A DNA stretch of 64,000 bases from Utricularia gibba. Lineage: Eukaryota; Plantae; Magnoliophyta. Below the pieces are notes generated by a model, which saw nothing but the letters and a program-made list of their open reading frames with translations, was not told the origin of the DNA and ran no database searches. The first letter of the stretch is position 1. Every line of letters starts with the position of its first letter. Shown here piece after piece: positions 23,633 to 55,767 of this stretch. The position numbers and the translations under genes were made by a program. Where the stretch lies: the NCBI GenBank assembly GCA_002189035.1, contig NEEC01000019.1:1488001-1552000 (forward strand). Reading direction: 5' to 3'.

Positions 23633-25904
23633 ATGCGCACCTCGCGAAAGTCTCCTGCACCTGAAAATCTTATACCAGTCTCTCGTTTACCGATGAAACG
23701 CAAGCTCCTCACAGAGACTGCGACTACGACTACTGTGAAACAAGAAGAAGAAGTCAAATCAACCACGGGTCAATTTCTGAGTTTCACCACGAAACGCCTC
23801 CGATCGACCGTCCGTCGCCGGAGGCAGTTTCGCATTGCGCCCATCGTTCGAAATGCTGGCATCAATTCGCATGCTACGGAAGTAAGCGAAGTATCCTGCG
23901 TATCGAGTGTATCGCCGAATCCGCGAGATGATGATCGGTGTCCTCGACTCATTACGCGATCTTACTCCAGGATAAAGTGCTACGAGAACCGGTGCTGCGA
24001 TCAATCGTCGCTAGTATCGGAGAATTCGTGCCTGGAATCGCATTCTAGATCAATCCTAGAATTTTCATTGAAGCTTAAGAATGAGGATGTGAGCGAATCT
24101 GATGCGCAATCAGTAGAGCAGCTTTCGAAATCTGAAGTGTCCCATGCTCCGTCGTTCTTATCGTCGGAGACGGTCACAGGAAACGAAAGCTTGGTCGAGG
24201 TGAACGGAAATCGGATCATCGTTGAAGTTCAGAACGATTCATATCGGGAATTTAATGATTCGGATTCTGAAAATGAGAATTCACTTGGTAACGACGCGGT
24301 ATCCAGAATCGGTGAAACTGTGACGGGCGAAGATACAAGAATTCAAGGTATTGTTGGATTCAACCTTGATTTGGCTTGCTCTGAGAACTTGCCCAATGAA
24401 GGAATTTACAGTGCCGATGAGGCTGAGAATGAGAACAGCACCTTATCGTCGAAGATACCAAATCTTTCATCGGAATCATGTTTCGATAGTTCAGATTATA
24501 CGCCGTCATTTTGGAGTTATGCTTCTGGAAGTCAGTTTTCTGAAAAGTCTTCAGGAGAAGAGAGTTCTTCACCGACTTATGAAATGCTCATGCTGTTTAA
24601 AACGCAGTTCAATAGATCTAATTTCGCTTCACAAGAAAGTGAACAGCATGATTCTCTGCATATGGATGTAAGGACTCTGTTTTTGATCTCGTTAGCAGAT
24701 ATTGATCTTCTTCATAAGAAAATTATTTGCAATTCGGGAATCTAGGATCTGGGCCTAGAAGATGTAGAGGAGGAAGAACAATACAGAATGATTAGGAAAC
24801 GGGAGAGGAGGAAAAGATATGTTCACAACTACGTAGAGAAGTACAGCGCACTTGAATGCGGTAAATTCATCGTCGAACAGCGGCTGCACATGGTTCATTG
24901 GATTGTTGAGGTCACTGAAGCTAACTCTACTTCTGATTGTAGGTTTTTTCATATTGTTTCCTGATCCAACTGAAGTTTTTTTTTTTTTTTTTAATTTGTT
25001 CTTTCAGCAAGCTACCCTCCAGGAGCTTCAAAAGGAGACCATATTTTTAGGGGTCAATCTACTTGATAGATTCCTTAGCAAAGGATACTTCAAAAGTGTG
25101 AGAAATCTTCAAATCGCTGCCATTGCATGCCTCACTCTAGCAATCAGATTAGAAGAAAATCAGCCCTACAACTGGTACTAGGCATTTACGTTGGCCAAAT
25201 TTGGTGGATCATGTCACTGTTGAATGGTTAGTTTGTGTGATAAATGGCAGCGTAAGGAAACATACATTCCATGTGGGAAACACAAGATACAGCCGATGTG
25301 AGGTGGTGGCTATGGAGTGGCTGGTGCAAGAGGTTCTCAATTTCGAGTGCTTCTTACCAACCTCATACACCTTCTTATGGTAACGTACAACTTTAGAATT
25401 CATATCGCTACAGTAAATTATAAGTGGCTACGTGCAATTGGGATTGTTCATTTGTGTAACAGGTTCTATTTAAAAGCTGCTAGAGCGAATGAATCGGTTG
25501 AAAAGACCGCCCATTACTTGGCGGTTCTTACACTTCTGGGTCAGCAGCTTCTCTGCTATTGGCCTTCTACTGTTGCTGCCGGTCTTGTTATCCTTGCCTC
25601 AATTGCCATGAAACAAGATGCATCATGCAACAGGGTAACAGCGGTACGCACCATACAATATTGTGATTTCGCACATCAATTTAAGAGAAAGCACAACTTC
25701 GGAGATGAAACCGTAAATGTTTTCTAAACTTTCAAACTGGCAATACAGATTCATGCAAGACAGAAAGATGATGATCTACCTAACTGCATAAAGGTAATCA
25801 ATGATCCAGTTTATACGTCATTCTTTGCTGGTATGCTCACAATCCAAATGGCTTAACTTAAGATTGTTACACAGAGCATGGAGTGGTTGGTGAAGTACAT
25901 CTGA
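23633..25904 (+). CDS. SDS: Meiotic cyclin SOLO DANCERS (start may be 23633 or the next ATG, MKRKL)
   Basis: Long S/E-rich exon 1 with SDYTPSFW...SGSQFSEKS; cyclin box [12 protein letters not shown]|...[44 protein letters not shown]; ends SMEWLVKYI*. Confidence 0.92.
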
Positions 25905-26129: not shown

Positions 26130-26660
26130 TTGAATTCTTTACCTAATCTACCCTCTGCTGGTTGTTTTGCAACATTCCCTGAAATTGAAAATTACAAGCG
26201 AATCAGAGAAGAACTGAATGCTCTAAAATTTCACTAAAAAGCATGGTGAGGAACCACGGCAGCGGATAGGGCATCCGGTAATAGCAACAAGTTGAAGAAG
26301 ACATGTACCTCCAAAAGCTTCAGAAATACATTGCAGTCCCATACGCAAATCCCGCTCTCCGAAGTACCGTAAAAAGCAATAGCATTTCATCTTCCCACAC
26401 CACGCAGGTAACAATCGATCTAACTAACCAATCCATATTAAAGAAAAAGCAACCGATCTGTCAGAGAATATAAGTAAAACTACCGTAATTAGGGCAGTTT
26501 AGACTTCGAAGCACAGCGATTGTGATCAGGGAGGTGGGAACGTTATACCAGACGGAATGGAAGGGGCAACCGTGTCACCGGAAGCCGACGAGACTGACTG
26601 TGCCGGTGATTAGATGGCCGCCGGCGGTGACTGTGGGATGTAGTGTACGAAAAATGATGG
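26130..26660 (-). pseudogene. ASB-like: Anthranilate synthase beta subunit (class I GATase) remnant
   Basis: Minus strand gives PNYGSFTYIL*Q (cf. DNYDSFTYNLCQ) and GIC[frameshift]MGLQCISEAFG|G (cf. GVCMGLQCIGEAFGG) followed by a GT donor. The intervening sequence is missing and stops are present. The duplicate at ~29800 reads NYGSFTYNL. Confidence 0.65.
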
Positions 26661-27674
26661 ATTTACCCATCACCGAGAGACTCGGAAGTAGAAGTATGCG
26701 AACTGCAGGGGATTCAATTTTGACTTACTGCAATTTTTTATTGGTAAAGCGTCATTTATATCGCAAGCATTTAAATAAATGAAAAAAATCTACAAATAAA
26801 CATATTTAATAAATTTAAAGTCTATTAATTAATAAAAAACATTTTTAAACATAATTAAAAATTATATATTTTTATCTTCTACACAAAAAGTCTAAACCCA
26901 AAGATTTGGAACATCTTTTTATATTAACCATGAAAAACGATAAATATTCTGATTTTTATAATAATAAGTTTTATCTTTCAATTGATGATATTAAATATGA
27001 TTATAACATTAAAACATAAAATAAATATAGCAAGTATAAAATATAACTAAGATAACCTTAAAGTGGTGTATGGTTGATAATTTTTATTATTTAAATATCT
27101 ATATATCAATAATAATATATATTTGATAAACTAGTTTAACAATACATAAGTATTATACAAAATAAATATAAAATACTTTGAGTTTAGTATTTTAAAACTC
27201 ACTTTTTTGTTGAAAAATTCAAATTTTAAATTATTTATTTTAAATATAAATAAATATTTTATTTATCTATTTTGTTGATATATTTATTGTTGATCACCTG
27301 TGCGTTGTGATATTCTTTGAAGTTCCTTTGTTTATTTTTTATGATTGTATTTGTTAATCAGAAGATTTTCATGAATGTTGGAATATGTAATTATGGTTTT
27401 TTTATTATTATTTATACTTGATAAAATCATGAATAATTAATCTTTATATAGAACTACAGCCTACTTAACACCTGATTATATTATATAATATTTTAATCAT
27501 ATCATGTTACATGGCAACATTTCCTAGTTTAGAGTAATATCTATATCTGATTACAAATCAGAATGTTTCCATATTTCAGGGCATCTGAATCCCTATAAAA
27601 AGAGGGTTGTTTTCGTTAAAGTAATTCTTCACACAGACTAACAGCCTAACCCCTCTTGCCGACTTGTTTTTCCA

Positions 27675-28538
27675 ATGGATCGCCTGGCCGCTCCTTTCGT
27701 GTCTGCGCCTTTCCCGATGAATATCCATGCTCCTCCATACGTGCCACTAAGTTTGAGGGAGTTCATACTTCCACAGATTTTCGAAGCTCCTCAGGGGTTG
27801 GATCCCCTGGCCCCTCCTTCCGTGCCTGCGACTTTCCCGATGAATATCCATGCTCCTCCATACGTGCCACTAAGTTTGAGGGAGTTCATACTTCCACAGA
27901 TTTTCGAAGCTCCTTACGGGTTGGATCCCCTGGCCCCTCCTGTCGTGCCTGCTCCTTTCCCGATGAATATCCATGCTCCTCCATACGTGACATCAAGTTT
28001 CACACAGTCCGTCGTTCCACAGATTTCCGAAGCTACTTACGGGTTGAATCCCGACGCTCCACCCTTCGTGCCACGTTTCAGAGGCTTTTGGTGCTATGTG
28101 ATGTTTCCTCGTAGTGAGAGTATTTCCTCCGATGAAGAACTGGAGGTTCTGGACAAACCCATCGTTGAGGGCAATGAGGTTGGTTCGAACCAGAGGAGCA
28201 GCGAGACGGAGGACGCGGCCTTCGCGGAGGAGATCGAGGAGGATGAACCTGCGCATGACGAACATCAAGAAAGGTTACTGAGGAGGTATCAGAGGATACT
28301 AATGGAGAGCATGACACTGAAGAACAATTGGGAAATTGAAGCCATTGATGAAGAGGGGCAGTCCAACATCTGCGTCGTTTGTCAGGAGGGCCTCTGCGAC
28401 GACGACGGCGGCATGATCGGAATCCTGGACTGCCAACATGAGTTTCATTCCGCATGCATCAAAAAATGGCTGGAAGCTAAGGACAAATGCCCCCTCTGTC
28501 GCGCAAGAGTCAAGGTTTCTCTGAACCGTCGTCGTTGA
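27675..28538 (+). CDS. Intronless RING-H2 E3 ligase with N-terminal 3x41-aa repeat of PAM2-like motifs (copy 1)
   Basis: C3H2C3 RING CVVC...CQHEFHSAC...CPLC; acidic linker; 3x123-bp internal repeat; upstream TATAAAA near 27595. Confidence 0.88.
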   Translation: MDRLAAPFVSAPFPMNIHAPPYVPLSLREFILPQIFEAPQGLDPLAPPSVPATFPMNIHAPPYVPLSLREFILPQIFEAPYGLDPLAPPVVPAPFPMNIHAPPYVTSSFTQSVVPQISEATYGLNPDAPPFVPRFRGFWCYVMFPRSESISSDEELEVLDKPIVEGNEVGSNQRSSETEDAAFAEEIEEDEPAHDEHQERLLRRYQRILMESMTLKNNWEIEAIDEEGQSNICVVCQEGLCDDDGGMIGILDCQHEFHSACIKKWLEAKDKCPLCRARVKVSLNRRR

Positions 28539-28795
28539 TCACCTTGTTCATCTGAATGCCCTGTCAGCACCTTTGTATCTTGGATCCAGATTGCAATGAA
28601 TATTAGAGAATGTTCACTTTGGCATTGCATTGAATTGTTTCCTTTTTTTATTTTTCAATCCGTTATATTTTTCTCAACGCTTCGCGGCAACCAGAAGAAT
28701 CGATGGGGCCAGCTTCGGTTTCCTTTCAGTAGTATAAATTGATTTGACCGAAGGAGTAGTGAAATTAGAACAGGTGAGATATTTATCGATCAACT

Positions 28796-29359
28796 ACGGC
28801 GGCTTTGAGCGTTTCCCCGGTCTTGACTTCTCCGCGAGACGACGCTACGCAGCTATACCGCGCGTTCAAAGGTGATGCGCAACTCTTCTTCTTTAATTCT
28901 GCTATCAGGAGATTTTATTTCGTTGTTTGTGTTAGAAATTTGAATGCTGAAGGTCAATTGTGTTGTTCTAGGTTTCGGTTGCGATAAGGAGGCCGCTATC
29001 AACGTTCTTGCTCATCGGGATGCGGCGCAGCGGCAGCTGATCGAAAACGAGTACAGAATGATGTACTCTGAGGAGCTTTCGAATCACCTTGCGAAAGAAC
29101 TCCACGGCGATCTCGAGGTACGGTGATGGAAATGGAATCAGCGACTTTGAATGTGTTTTTTAATCTTGAATCGTTGGTTGAGTTTTTTTTTTTTTCGTAT
29201 TCAGACTTCAGAGAGCGTTTTTGATGTGTTGTCTGATCCGGCTTCGCGTGATGCGATCATTTTGAGGAAGAGTTTATCTGGTGAAATAATTAATCTAAAA
29301 ACTGCTACTGAATCATATATATGCTCCCGCAGTTGTGCGCAGCTTCAACTCTTGAAGCA
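28796..29359 (+). pseudogene. 5'-partial annexin D5 copy (exons 1-3), start codon ATG>ACG, truncated
   Basis: ACG GCG GCT TTG AGC versus ATG GCG ACT TTG AGC in the intact copy; indels in exon 3; homology ends at TTGAAGCA (29359). Confidence 0.88.
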
Positions 29360-29360
29360 C

Positions 29361-29701
29361 AACATACATTCCATGTGGGAAACACAAGATACAGCCGACA
29401 TGAGGTGGTGGCTATGGAGTGGCTGGTGCAAGAGGTTCTCAATTTCGAGTGCTTCTTACCAACCTCATACACCTTCTTATGGTAACATACAACTTTAGAA
29501 TTCATATCGCTACAGTAAATTATAAGTGGGTACGTGCAATTGGGATTGTTCATTTTTCTAACAGGTTCTATTTAAAAGCTGCTAGAGCGAATGAATCGGT
29601 TGAAAAGACCGCCCATTACTTGGCGGTTCTTACACTTCTGGGTCAGCAGCTTCTCTGCTATTGGCCTTCAACTGTTGCTGCCGGTCTTGTTATTCTTGCC
29701 T
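29361..29701 (+). pseudogene. Direct duplicate of SDS internal exons/intron (source 25259-25599)
   Basis: Near-identical sequence from AACATACATTCCATGTGGG to GGTCTTGTTAT(T/C)CTTGCCT; ORF 29419..29703 mirrors ORF 25317..25727. Confidence 0.92.
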
Positions 29702-30146
29702 AAAAAGCAATAGCATTTCATCTTCCCACACCACTCAGGTAACAAATCGATCTAAGTACCCAATCCGGATTAAAGAAAAGCAACCGATTTTTCAAGAGAT
29801 TATAAGTAAAACTACCGTAATTAGGGCAGTGGAGGCTTCGAAGCACAGTGATTGTGATCATTGAGGTGGGAACGTTGTACCCGATGCAATGTAAGGGGCA
29901 ACCGCGTCACCGGCAGCCCACGAGACTGACCGTGCCGGTGATTAGATGGCCGCCGGCGGTGACTGGGGGATGTAGTGTACCAAAAATGACGGGTTTATCC
30001 ATCACCGAGAGACTTCGAAGTAGAAGTACGCGAACTGCAGGGGGATTCAATTTTGACTTCCTGCAATTTTTTATTGGTGAAGTGTTATTTATATTTCAAT
30101 AGCATTTAAATAAATGAAAAAAATCCACAAATAGACATATTTAATA
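29701..30146 (+). repeat. Direct duplicate of 26370-26820 (includes the 5' part of the ASB pseudogene)
   Basis: TAAAAAGCAATAGCATTTCATCTTCCCACAC...TTTAATAAA(T/C)TTAAAG shared; ORFs 26522 and 29848 are paralogous. Confidence 0.9.
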
Positions 30147-30310
30147 AACTTAAAGGTATGAATATCATAGGCCTGATTCGTGTATCATAAATCGGGACAT
30201 GAAATGAAACACAACACCACACAAGAGAAGGAAGCAGCAACAGACACTTTCTTTCGACATGAAACGAAACCACAACTTCGACGCAGAAAACACCGAGAAC
30301 AAAACGTGGA

Positions 30311-33474: not shown

Positions 33475-34904
33475 TCAGCGATACGTCGGCCCCAAAAGTG
33501 AAAGAAGGAATGCCCTGTAATGGCTGGATGTTTCTGCGTGAACTGCATCATTTAGTGGCGTGTGATACTTCTTTTGGTACTCTGCTTTTATGTACTGCAT
33601 GTCGATCTCTGTTCTGGTCACTATGACTCTTGTGAGAGTGGATTCATCAGTTCCAATGCCCTTCATTGAGTGATGCAGCAACTGTGGAATTTGCAGGAGA
33701 AATTCAGCATCATGAGGAATATATGTAAGATGTATAACACTGAAACACCCTTCAAGCAAGTGCAGAGAGGTGCAGTTCGGTCAATACCTTTGCGAAGTAC
33801 TTGGCAGGATTCAGAGCACATTGCAAAATTGTCAATAGGGCGAACTCGAAGAGGCCTGATGTTTCCCTTTTAACTGCCTGAAGGAGACGACGTGTTTAAT
33901 GTGTGGTATATGAATCAATTCGTGGGAGATCGTAACGAGCCTACCTTTTTCAGAGAGCGGCCGTACATTGAGTGATAAGCAGAAGCCACGGCAGCCAAAC
34001 GTCCAGGACTAGACTCGGAAAATATGTGTATGAATGTTTTCTCATCGGTTCCCAGCCTCCTTTCTCCAGCTTTGTAGAGTGACTTCGCATCGTGCTCTGC
34101 TCCTGCCCTGTCCACAATTGGACCTTCAAAGCGTACTTTACTGACGTAAGCCAGAAGCAACTGCAGCATTGGTGATGCTAGGACAATCAGTGAGTGATTA
34201 TATTACGCAGCACAAGGATAACCATCAAATATGCTTTCATGTTCTGGTATCATAGCAAGACGAGAATAATGACCTTTTTCAAATCACCGGTTATTTGACA
34301 CTCAATGTCTTGTTCAAGATGAAGATGAAATCTAGTAACGTATATCTGCTTCAAGTGTTGAAGCTGCGCAGAGCTGCGGGAGCATATGACTTCAGTAGCA
34401 GTTTTTAGATTAATTATTTCACCAGATAAACTCTTCCTCAAAATGATTGCATCACGCGAGGCCGGATCAGACAACCACATCAAAATCGCTCTCTGAATAC
34501 GAAAAAAAAACTCAACCAACGATTCAAGATAAAAAAAAAAAAAACACATTCAAAGCCGCTGATTCCATTTCCATCACCGTACCTCGAGATCGCCGTGGAG
34601 TTCTTTCGCAAGGCGATTCGAAAGCTCCTCAGAGTAAATCATTCTGTACTCGTTTTCGATCAGCTGCCGCTGCGCCGCATCCCGATGAGCAAGAATGTTG
34701 ATAACGGCCTCCTTATCGCAACCGAAACCTAGAACAACACAATTGATTTTCAGCATCCAAATTTCCAACACAAACAACAAAATAAAATCTCCTGATAGCA
34801 GAATTAAAGAAGAAGAGTTCTGCGTCACCCTTGAAAGCGCGGTATAGCTGCGTAGCGTCGTCTCTAGGAGAAGTCAAGACCGGGGGAACGCTCAAAGTCG
34901 CCAT
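33475..34904 (-). CDS. ANN5: Annexin D5-like, intact, 6 exons
   Basis: [26 protein letters not shown]|FGCD...LAHRDA.QR; [18 protein letters not shown]; [30 protein letters not shown]. Confidence 0.95.
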
Positions 34905-37238
34905 AGTTGATCGATAGATATCTCACCTGTTCTAATTTCACAACTCCTCTAGTCAAATCAATTTATAGTACTCAAAGGAAACCGAAGCTGGGCCCCATCG
35001 TTCTTCTGGTCGGGACGCGTTCGTTAGGATGTGACGTGTAACGCGTACGATAAAAATATAATATCATGGTTTTGAATTTTCTTCTTTTTTTTTGGCGTAC
35101 GACATACAAAGGTGCCAAACCATTTGCGAAATATATATTTTATTAAAAATAAATATGTTTATAAAATTTTCAAAAAAAAACCCCCGTTCAATTTATATTC
35201 AGTTTTGCTATCCAATTCTATTCCAAGAAAATTGGAAAAGTTAAAAATACTTTACATTTTTTAAAGCCTAAAAAAATGTGACCGAAGGAGTTGTTTTAAA
35301 AAATAAATTAGGTCGCGAAGCGTTCGTAAGAATGTGACGTGTGACGAGTACGAGAAAAATATAACGGATTGAAAAATAAAAAGGAAGCAATTCAATGCGA
35401 GTGACATTCTCTAAGATTCATTGGATTCTGGATCCAAGATACAAAGGTGCTGACAGGGCATTCAGATGAACAGAAGGATTCAATTCAAGCAAATCAGGTG
35501 ATCAACGACGACGGTTCAGAGAAACCTTGACTCTTGCGCGACAGAGGGGGCATTTGTCCTTAGCTTCCAGCCATTTTTTGATGCATGCGGAATGAAACTC
35601 ATGTTGGCAGTCCAGGATTCCGATCATGCCGCCGTCGTCGTCGCAGAGGCCCTCCTGACAAACGACGCAGATGTTGGACTGCCCCTCTTCATCAATGGCT
35701 TCAATTTCCCAATTGTTCTTCAGTGTCATGCTCTCCATTAGTATCCTCTGATACCTCCTCAGTAACCTTTCTTGATGTTCGTCATGCGCAGGTTCATCCT
35801 CCTCGATCTCCTCCGCGAAGGCCGCGTCCTCCGTCTCGCTGCTCCTCTGGTTCGAACCAACCTCATTGCCCTCAACGATGGGTTTGTCCAGAACCTCCAG
35901 TTCTTCATCGGAGGAAATACTCTCACTACGAGGAAACATCACATAGCACCAAAAGCCTCTGAAACGTGGCACGAAGGGTGGAGCGTCGGGATTCAACCCG
36001 TAAGTAGCTTCGGAAATCTGTGGAACGACGGACTGTGTGAAACTTGATGTCACGTATGGAGGAGCATGGATATTCATCGGGAAAGGAGCAGGCACGACAG
36101 GAGGGGCCAGGGGATCCAACCCGTAAGGAGCTTCGAAAATCTGTGGAAGTATGAACTCCCTCAAACTTAGTGGCACGTATGGAGGAGCATGGATATTCAT
36201 CGGGAAAGTCGCAGGCACGGAAGGAGGGGCCAGGGGATCCAACCCCTGAGGAGCTTCGAAAATCTGTGGAAGTATGAACTCCCTCAAACTTAGTGGCACG
36301 TATGGAGGAGCATGGATATTCATCGGGAAAGGCGCAGACACGAAAGGAGCGGCCAGGCGATCCATTGGAAAAACAAGTCGGCAAGAGGGGGTTAGAGTAG
36401 TCTGAAGAATTACTCTCACGAAAACAACCCTTTTTATAGGGATTCAGATGCCTCACTTCCGCTGAAATATGGAAACATTAGGATTAGTAATGAAATACGG
36501 ATATCACTGTAAACTAGTAAATGTTGCCATGTAATATAATATAATTAAAATATTATATAGTATAATCAGTTTTCATTAGTGTTAAATATAATCAGGTTTT
36601 CATTAAAATATAGATTACTTCTTCATGATTTTATTAATTATAAATAATAAAAAATAGAAAAAAATCAATAAATCTGCCAAAATTACATATTCCAACAATC
36701 ATGAAAATCTTATGATTAAAAAATACAAACATCAAACATGAATAAAGTAATTTTTTTTTAAAAAAAGAACACCACAATGCACAAGTGATCAAGTCAGTTT
36801 ATCAATAAAATAGATAAATAAATTATTTTATTTTATATTTAAAATAAATAATTAAATTTTTGAATTTTTCAACAAAAACGTTAAGTATTTTTATATTTTT
36901 TAAAATATGCATGCAATTGTTAAACTAGTTTATTAAATATATATTATTATTAATATATAGATATTTAAATAATAAAAACTATATACCAAGCAACACTTTA
37001 AGGTTATCTTAATTATAGTTCATACTTGCTATATTTATTTTATGATTTAATGTAATATTCATATTTAATATCATCAATTAAAAAATAAATTTATTATTTT
37101 AAAAATCAGAATATCTATCGTTTCTCATGATTGATACAATAAGATATCCCAAATCTTTGGGTTAGACTTTTGGTATAGAAAAGAAAAATATATAATTTTT
37201 AATTATGTTTTATTTTTTACTAATTAATATAAATTTAG
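34347..37238 (-). repeat. Right (source) arm of the inverted segmental duplication
   Basis: Reverse complement of 26810-29359, with an extra ~300 bp at ~35010-35340. Confidence 0.9.
35502..36365 (-). CDS. Intronless PAM2-repeat RING-H2 E3 ligase (copy 2), identical to copy 1
   Basis: Same 287-aa protein; the reverse complement matched copy 1 base-for-base in a manual line-by-line comparison. Confidence 0.88.
   Translation of the reverse strand: MDRLAAPFVSAPFPMNIHAPPYVPLSLREFILPQIFEAPQGLDPLAPPSVPATFPMNIHAPPYVPLSLREFILPQIFEAPYGLDPLAPPVVPAPFPMNIHAPPYVTSSFTQSVVPQISEATYGLNPDAPPFVPRFRGFWCYVMFPRSESISSDEELEVLDKPIVEGNEVGSNQRSSETEDAAFAEEIEEDEPAHDEHQERLLRRYQRILMESMTLKNNWEIEAIDEEGQSNICVVCQEGLCDDDGGMIGILDCQHEFHSACIKKWLEAKDKCPLCRARVKVSLNRRR

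Positions 37239-52416: not shown

Positions 52417-55767
<3,351 letters not shown>

Follow-up and report, generated by a model that had tools for sequence, protein, structure and literature searches.

A RING-H2 gene of Utricularia gibba with a tandem-repeat N-terminus and one consensus-grade PAM2 motif: a candidate PABP-docking ubiquitin ligase

The gene and its coding frame

The window analysed here is a 64,000-nt stretch of Utricularia gibba DNA (contig NEEC01000019.1, positions 1,488,001 to 1,552,000 of the forward strand). It is ordinary gene space, containing genes or gene fragments for a semialdehyde dehydrogenase, Nup133, ribose-5-phosphate isomerase and others. The gene of interest is intact and intron-free, and its open reading frame (287 amino acids, ATG to TGA) was recovered exactly as a previous sequence-only reading of this DNA had described it. 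The layout proposed in that reading was likewise borne out: a 123-bp array and seven motifs of ten residues each are followed by an acidic linker and a full C3H2C3 RING (Table 1).

Table 1. Features of the PAM2 and RING-H2 gene and its twin, in window coordinates (aa, amino acids)
Feature	Positions	Strand	Basis or remark
TATA-like box (TATAAAAA), putative promoter element, 81 nt 5' of the ATG	27594..27601	+	Read from the sequence; kept in the twin
Single-exon CDS, PAM2 and RING-H2 protein	27675..28538 (stop codon included)	+	ORF list; Pfam zf-RING_2 and PAM2
123-bp (41-codon) tandem array, three full units and a partial fourth	27676..28072	+	Tandem Repeats Finder; repeat search
Motif 1, MDRLAAPFVS, aa 1-10	27675..27704	+	Ala7 and Phe10 kept; fails positions 4, 5 and 12
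Motif 2, MNIHAPPYVP, aa 15-24	27717..27746	+	Near-consensus (Met3, Ile5, Tyr10); matches the loose pattern; no Pfam hit
Motif 3, LDPLAPPSVP, aa 42-51	27798..27827	+	Asp4; Phe10 replaced by Ser (TCC)
Motif 4, MNIHAPPYVP, aa 56-65	27840..27869	+	DNA identical to motif 2
Motif 5, LDPLAPPVVP, aa 83-92	27921..27950	+	Asp4; Phe10 replaced by Val (GTC)
Motif 6, MNIHAPPYVT, aa 97-106	27963..27992	+	Like motif 2 except Thr12
Motif 7, LNPDAPPFVP, core aa 124-133	28044..28073	+	Consensus-grade PAM2 (PF07145); envelope aa 121-135 at 28035..28079
Acidic Ser/Glu/Asp-rich linker, about aa 146-193, predicted disordered	28110..28253	+	Translation; AF2
Predicted helix before the RING, aa 194-220	28254..28334	+	AF2 secondary structure, pLDDT about 51-65
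RING-H2 (C3H2C3) finger, aa 232-276	28368..28502	+	Pfam zf-RING_2 (E 6.9e-11) and zf-rbx1 (E 1.2e-10)
Inverted twin gene	35502..36365	-	CDS identical, 0 differences over 864 nt

The array makes up the first 377-400 nt of the frame, arranged head-to-tail. Tandem Repeats Finder places it at 27676-28052 with a period of 123, 3.1 copies, 90% matches and no indels, while the repeat search returned three 151-nt copies in register at 123-nt spacing, the later two being 94% and 81% identical to the first. A second frame on the same strand (27656-28114, 152 aa) also crosses the repeats and is probably open merely through their composition. It was rejected as the coding frame as it does not reach the RING, and the frame beginning at 27675 is taken as coding because it alone runs on into that domain. 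Substitutions between units (27676-28052) fall mostly at codon positions 1 and 2 of the real frame, in small numbers. The frame offset by +1, in which these substitutions look 'synonymous' (dN/dS 0.2-0.3), contains stop codons and was discarded.

Roughly 400 nt downstream, the RING gene is followed by an annexin exon (28944-29123, +; Pfam Annexin, E 3.1e-13), which was duplicated together with the gene in an inverted segment (34528-35010, -, 92% identity). Two pairs of direct repeats, 25259-25602 with 29361-29704 (97% over 344 nt) and 26370-26820 with 29701-30155 (90% over 456 nt), lie on either side of the RING gene and the first annexin exon; they are contiguous downstream and about 770 nt apart upstream, and may be an element that was duplicated or the product of local tandem rearrangement. 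About 3 kb upstream of the gene there is a 370-aa open reading frame (23633-24742, +) with no Pfam match at E<=0.01. Further away, an open reading frame at 54716-55471 (+) carries a fragment of a poly(A) polymerase RNA-binding domain (PF04926, E 2e-5). This is probably one exon of a poly(A) polymerase gene, and its nearness to a gene with a PAM2 motif is probably coincidental.

The inverted twin and transcript evidence

Comparison of the two copies (27650-28600 against 35440-36390) showed that their identity extends to the 25 nt before the ATG and to most of the approximately 60 nt after the stop codon, where it is interrupted by one 23-nt indel. The flanks beyond are 83-84% identical upstream and 91-95% identical downstream, as determined with an AT-rich stretch about 420 nt upstream of the RING gene (27217-27259) masked with N. 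The 3' flank of the twin also contains an AT-rich insertion of about 330 nt (35021-35352), which is missing from the first copy (28675/28676). Since an identical coding sequence lies inside diverged flanks, the two copies are best explained by recent gene conversion roughly limited to the presumed transcribed part. The TATAAAAA box is kept in both copies despite an upstream flank of only about 84% identity, and the 287-codon frame and the eight RING ligands are intact in both.

Transcript support for the RING gene is thin. Sampled words of 28080-28600 were found in two 'RNA?' runs from different studies at shares of 0.25 and 0.21, compared with 0.58-0.90 of sampled words in DNA runs of the same organism. 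The repeat half of the gene contributed no sampled words in either 'RNA?' run, as the word counts imply. At 8 and 86 million letters these runs are very small, hence absence from them means little. The exact 287-aa protein is also absent from a collection of 15 billion proteins that includes gene calls on Logan assemblies.

These results bear on the idea that both copies are silent, and that their frames are open only through recent duplication and conversion between the inverted copies. An identical coding sequence within flanks of 84-95% identity points to a recent conversion, which would also have erased early decay, and the low word shares in the RNA runs and the absence of the exact protein from the collection agree with silence. 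However, in both copies the 287-codon frame and the TATA box have stayed intact together with all eight RING ligands, and two independent 'RNA?' runs, small as they are, contain part of the 3' half. On balance we regard silence of both copies as rather improbable.

The RING-H2 domain and its relatives

The RING-H2 finger retains all eight metal ligands (C233, C236, C253, H255, H258, C261, C272 and C275), which are invariant in comparison with aligned relatives, and its pLDDT in the AF2 model is 86-88. Its best solved relative is the RING of RNF38 (4v3k, E 8.6e-12, 48 bits), which was solved with UbcH5B~Ub and with which all ligands align. The CVVC, HEFH, KWL and CPLCRA segments are common to the two domains. 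Similarly, alignment with RNF38 shows that the Val/Ile following Cys1 is kept, as are Trp265, Pro273 and the Arg next to the last Cys; we take these positions to be those that bind the E2 in RNF38-type RINGs.

Run against 1.84 billion representatives, phmmer returned 6,149 hits; every one was through the RING, and multi-RING proteins stood at the top. The nearest RINGs, at 52-61% identity, are found in small Lamiales RING-H2 proteins, including those of Paulownia, Buddleja, Sesamum (annotated as 'MBR2'), Castilleja and Penstemon. Like these MBR2/BIG BROTHER-like ligases, the present protein carries the CQ-[ED]-x-LC insertion, which is unusual, as well as the signature MIG-x-LDC-x-HE[FY]H. However, their pre-RING GLSEE...LKTR segment is not recognisable in the present protein, and they have neither a PAM2 motif nor the 123-bp array, both of which are found in the present gene. 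Pfam gave no PAM2 hit in the Paulownia, Buddleja, Sesamum and Castilleja relatives, and no PAM2-like pattern was matched in the fetched relatives, including that of Penstemon. The top Swiss-Prot match in Foldseek was a BIG BROTHER-related protein, a weak pointer given a TM of 0.16 (TM <0.3 throughout) from a mostly disordered model.

The N-terminus stands apart from this family. No relative of it was found among approximately 15 billion proteins, also when aa 1-140 were searched alone, and a word-indexed set of 5.8 billion returned no useful homologue for the whole protein, aa 1-140 or aa 185-287. As there is no relative of the N-terminus, conservation cannot vouch for motif 7. Taken as a whole, sequence comparison indicates that the gene is young, confined to its lineage and most likely derived from the small MBR2/BIG BROTHER-like RING-H2 ligases found in Lamiales.

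Grading of the seven motifs as PAM2

All seven motif strings are present in the translation as the sequence-only reading had written them, and two types alternate: an L-type (motifs 1, 3, 5 and 7) and an M-type (motifs 2, 4 and 6). Their description as 'PAM2-like' holds as a statement of resemblance. As PAM2 motifs proper it does not hold, since the Pfam model PF07145 (gathering cut-off 20 bits) recognises one of the seven when they are scanned apart. On the whole protein the model scored 22.4 bits over a single stretch, aa 121-135. Motif 7, scanned as an isolated 20-mer, reached 29.3 bits (E 5.2e-7), while motifs 1-6 were each not detected at E<=10; HMMER filters drop very weak matches, and these six are thus recorded as not detected rather than scored.

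The structural definition of PAM2 calls for Leu/Pro/Phe at position 3, Asn/Ser at 4, Pro/Val/Thr at 5, Ala at 7, Phe at 10 and Pro at 12, of which Ala7 and Phe10 are invariant and Phe10 is the most important residue in the motif (PMC2854688). All six key positions are satisfied in motif 7, the only one of the seven to match the strict pattern. The other six fail the definition, and Phe10 is absent from five of them (motifs 2-6). The earlier suspicion that motifs 3 and 5 may be dead was right, in that Asn4 and Phe10 are both missing. An engineered 'super-PAM2' peptide used as a probe (SNLNPNAPEFHP...) tolerates the Pro that motif 7 has at position 8 (10.1101/2021.02.07.430161). Phe10 can be replaced by Trp in LARP4/4B (PMC7356810); for Tyr at this position, no literature evidence was found either way. 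Moreover, the PAM2 motifs of Makorins are off consensus and needed a custom model (10.1101/516005), and a motif without a Pfam hit is therefore not thereby shown to be non-binding.

Several observations bear on whether the match in motif 7 could be accidental. Shuffling of the Pro/Ala-rich N-terminus produced the strict PAM2 pattern in 0.1-0.25% of cases, a rarity that makes a strict match unlikely by chance. Neither the strict nor the loose pattern was matched in 160 fetched RING relatives (50,467 residues). When aa 1-140 alone were submitted to a language-model search, a PAM2 cluster ranked first (score 0.49, a lead only). A PDB sequence search with the PAM2 region returned designed propeller proteins only, which were set aside as chance matches. 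In the AF2 model, built on a shallow 10-sequence alignment and indicative only, aa 1-174 are without secondary structure and almost all at pLDDT <50, including the whole of aa 130-174. This would place motif 7 in an accessible disordered segment, as is usual for short linear motifs.

Evolution of the array

Between units 1 and 2 there are 7 codon differences, every one of them amino-acid-changing, and between units 2 and 3 there are 13, with 12 amino-acid-changing. The resulting dN/dS between units is at least 1.3 (Nei-Gojobori). With 0-1 synonymous against 7-12 nonsynonymous changes, no purifying selection is visible on the array; nor do these substitutions prove positive selection, the number of synonymous changes being not significantly below neutral expectation (p = 0.23). 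The Phe10 codon of the L-type motif, TTC, has become TCC in the second unit and GTC in the third, and on this codon evidence Phe10 was lost twice, through independent single-base changes. Comparison of motif 7 with the other motifs gave pS of 0.42-0.57, above pN of 0.21-0.34. This was not counted as selection because the motifs were paired by amino-acid likeness, with 30 nt per comparison.

The MNIHAPPYV block has identical DNA in all three units, synonymous sites included. Such identity points to recency or homogenisation, and selection is not demonstrable from it. This block has a place in another reading of the array, in which the shared A-P-P-x-V-P core is a proline-rich ligand for some other module or substrate and the ligase has a role unrelated to mRNA metabolism, perhaps resembling that of its MBR/BIG BROTHER relatives, which target nuclear or growth regulators. 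What all seven motifs have in common is A-[AP]-P-x-V with P, S or T as the next residue, rather than the PAM2-specific Asn4 and Phe10; the MNIHAPPYV DNA is identical across the three units, and the nearest relatives are MBR2/BIG BROTHER-like ligases. However, neither Pfam nor any other model points to such a ligand in the present protein, the data suggest no partner, and the identity of the MNIHAPPYV blocks reaches synonymous sites, as recency rather than selection would produce. A proline-ligand function is considered very unlikely.

As for its origin, aa 21-45 of the repeat align with aa 11-37 of a Buddleja relative (P0025) at 46% identity (E 0.005, BLASTP, single comparison). The Buddleja sequence was chosen by eye among about six relatives, which makes this evidence modest. 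It suggests, at the level of sequence, that the repeat unit descends from the N-terminal segment of the RING family itself, a segment that is not PAM2 in the relatives. Most likely the triplication of the 41-codon unit was recent and rebuilt the N-terminus.

This history raises an explanation to which we assign real weight, appreciably below even: the gene may be a young, fast-evolving and dispensable RING-H2 duplicate whose N-terminus grew by slippage or unequal crossover from the Pro-rich N-terminal segment of the family, in which case the PAM2 match, located in the final, partial unit, would be a compositional accident and PABP would not be engaged. The resemblance of aa 21-45 to a non-PAM2 Buddleja N-terminus is in keeping with such an origin, as are the dN/dS of at least 1.3 between units, the double loss of Phe10, the absence of orthologues from databases and the weak RNA support. 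Nevertheless, an accident does not account readily for a strict six-position match that is so rare in shuffles and absent from the RING relatives, for a second, independent near-consensus motif type inside the same 123-bp unit, or for the full integrity of both gene copies.

Proposed docking on poly(A)-binding proteins and the question of multivalency

The sequence-only reading had proposed a PABP-docking ligase with several binding sites. The part of this proposal that is supported is an intact RING-H2 joined to one motif above the PAM2 cut-off, while the multi-site part is not. A single-site PABP-docking E3 with a logic like that of Makorin-1 is predicted here, and we favour this reading tentatively, with confidence only a little under even. 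In such a model, the LNPDAPPFVP segment (aa 124-133) would dock on cytoplasmic poly(A)-binding proteins through their MLLE domain. Docking would then bring the RNF38-type RING-H2, together with the E2~ubiquitin bound to it, to polyadenylated mRNPs, where PABP or PABP-associated factors could be ubiquitinated, as they are by Makorin-1 in animals. The three MNIHAPPYV copies may contribute weak avidity, while the LDPLAPP[S/V]VP copies and MDRLAAPFVS are probably inert. The sequence analysis itself establishes how the gene is built, its repeats, the grades of the motifs, the predicted disorder and a complete RING; for the present protein we infer MLLE binding, ligase activity, substrates and expression alike. 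Against docking stand the N-terminus without relatives, the nearest RING relatives without PAM2, the unconstrained repeats, the loss of Phe10 in two copies and the thin transcripts.

The stronger claim, that repeat expansion produced a multivalent MLLE binder able to read PABP density, is unsupported, as six of the seven motifs are missed by the PAM2 model. Working multivalency is also undercut by the five motifs without Phe10 (two of them by single-base loss) and by the dN/dS of at least 1.3 between units. Multivalent reading of poly(A) length would need the Tyr-type motifs to bind MLLE, so that motif 7 and the three Tyr-type sites could together hold several PABPs along one tail, and we consider this highly improbable. 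If it were true, the residence of the ligase, and hence ubiquitination of PABP or its partners, would scale with poly(A) tail length, and differences in unit copy number among paralogues would tune the response to it.

Comparison with known systems

The combination of PAM2 and RING is known in animals and fungi, while a plant PAM2 and RING-H2 protein formed via tandem-repeat growth appears to be undescribed in the searchable literature. No plant PAM2 and RING-H2 protein was found there; hits to a rice ozone GWAS and to NFXL2 were irrelevant or negative. If motif 7 binds MLLE, the gene would be a case of a short linear motif grafted onto an E3 through recent repeat evolution, and would offer a lineage-specific plant route for ubiquitinating PABP complexes. 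Its general importance is limited by its youth, its restriction to a single lineage and the weak expression evidence.

Among plant proteins, the nearest parallel for the PAM2 part is found in the ERD15/CID group, in which an N-terminal PAM2 binds PAB2, PAB4 and PAB8. Binding of GsERD15B to PABs, for example, was detected by Y2H and BiFC (PMC8196659). However, ERD15/CID proteins combine PAM2 with PAE1 and other family motifs, or with LSm, CUE or RRM domains, and are without a RING.

The fungal protein Upa1 of Ustilago maydis, like the present protein, combines MLLE-binding peptides with a C-terminal RING, in an arrangement of one PAM2, two PAM2-like motifs, ankyrin repeats, a FYVE domain and the RING (PMC4466420). 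Upa2 has four PAM2 motifs and is described as a 'multi-PAM2' protein (10.1101/455378). Both are large endosomal scaffolds in which the motifs are dispersed, whereas those of the present gene lie in a recent tandem array. The PAM2 motifs of Upa1 and Upa2, as well as the RING of Upa1, were dispensable in the assays used (PMC4466420; 10.1101/455378), and that genuine PAM2 motifs can be dispensable is counted here against the docking model.

The template for the proposed docking mechanism is provided by the Makorins, PAM2-bearing RING ligases that link ubiquitination to poly(A) mRNPs in animals. MKRN1 and MKRN3, like the present protein, carry a RING ligase and a PAM2 peptide in one chain (10.1101/516005; MKRN3: PMC8053111), and in MKRN1 binding to PABPC1/4 depends on the PAM2, which brings the ligase to PABP on poly(A); its substrates include PABP and RPS10 (10.1101/516005). 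Makorins are characterised by CCCH zinc fingers on either side of a C3HC4-type RING, an MKRN C-terminal domain, RNA binding and metazoan-wide conservation. In contrast, the present protein has a RING-H2, no RNA-binding domain was seen in it (no Pfam hit to a CCCH finger or MKRN1_C at E<=10) and it is without detectable orthologues. The PAM2 itself also differs, as that of Makorins deviates from the consensus which motif 7 fits. To judge from its domains, the present protein is no Makorin, although it may act in a Makorin-like way.
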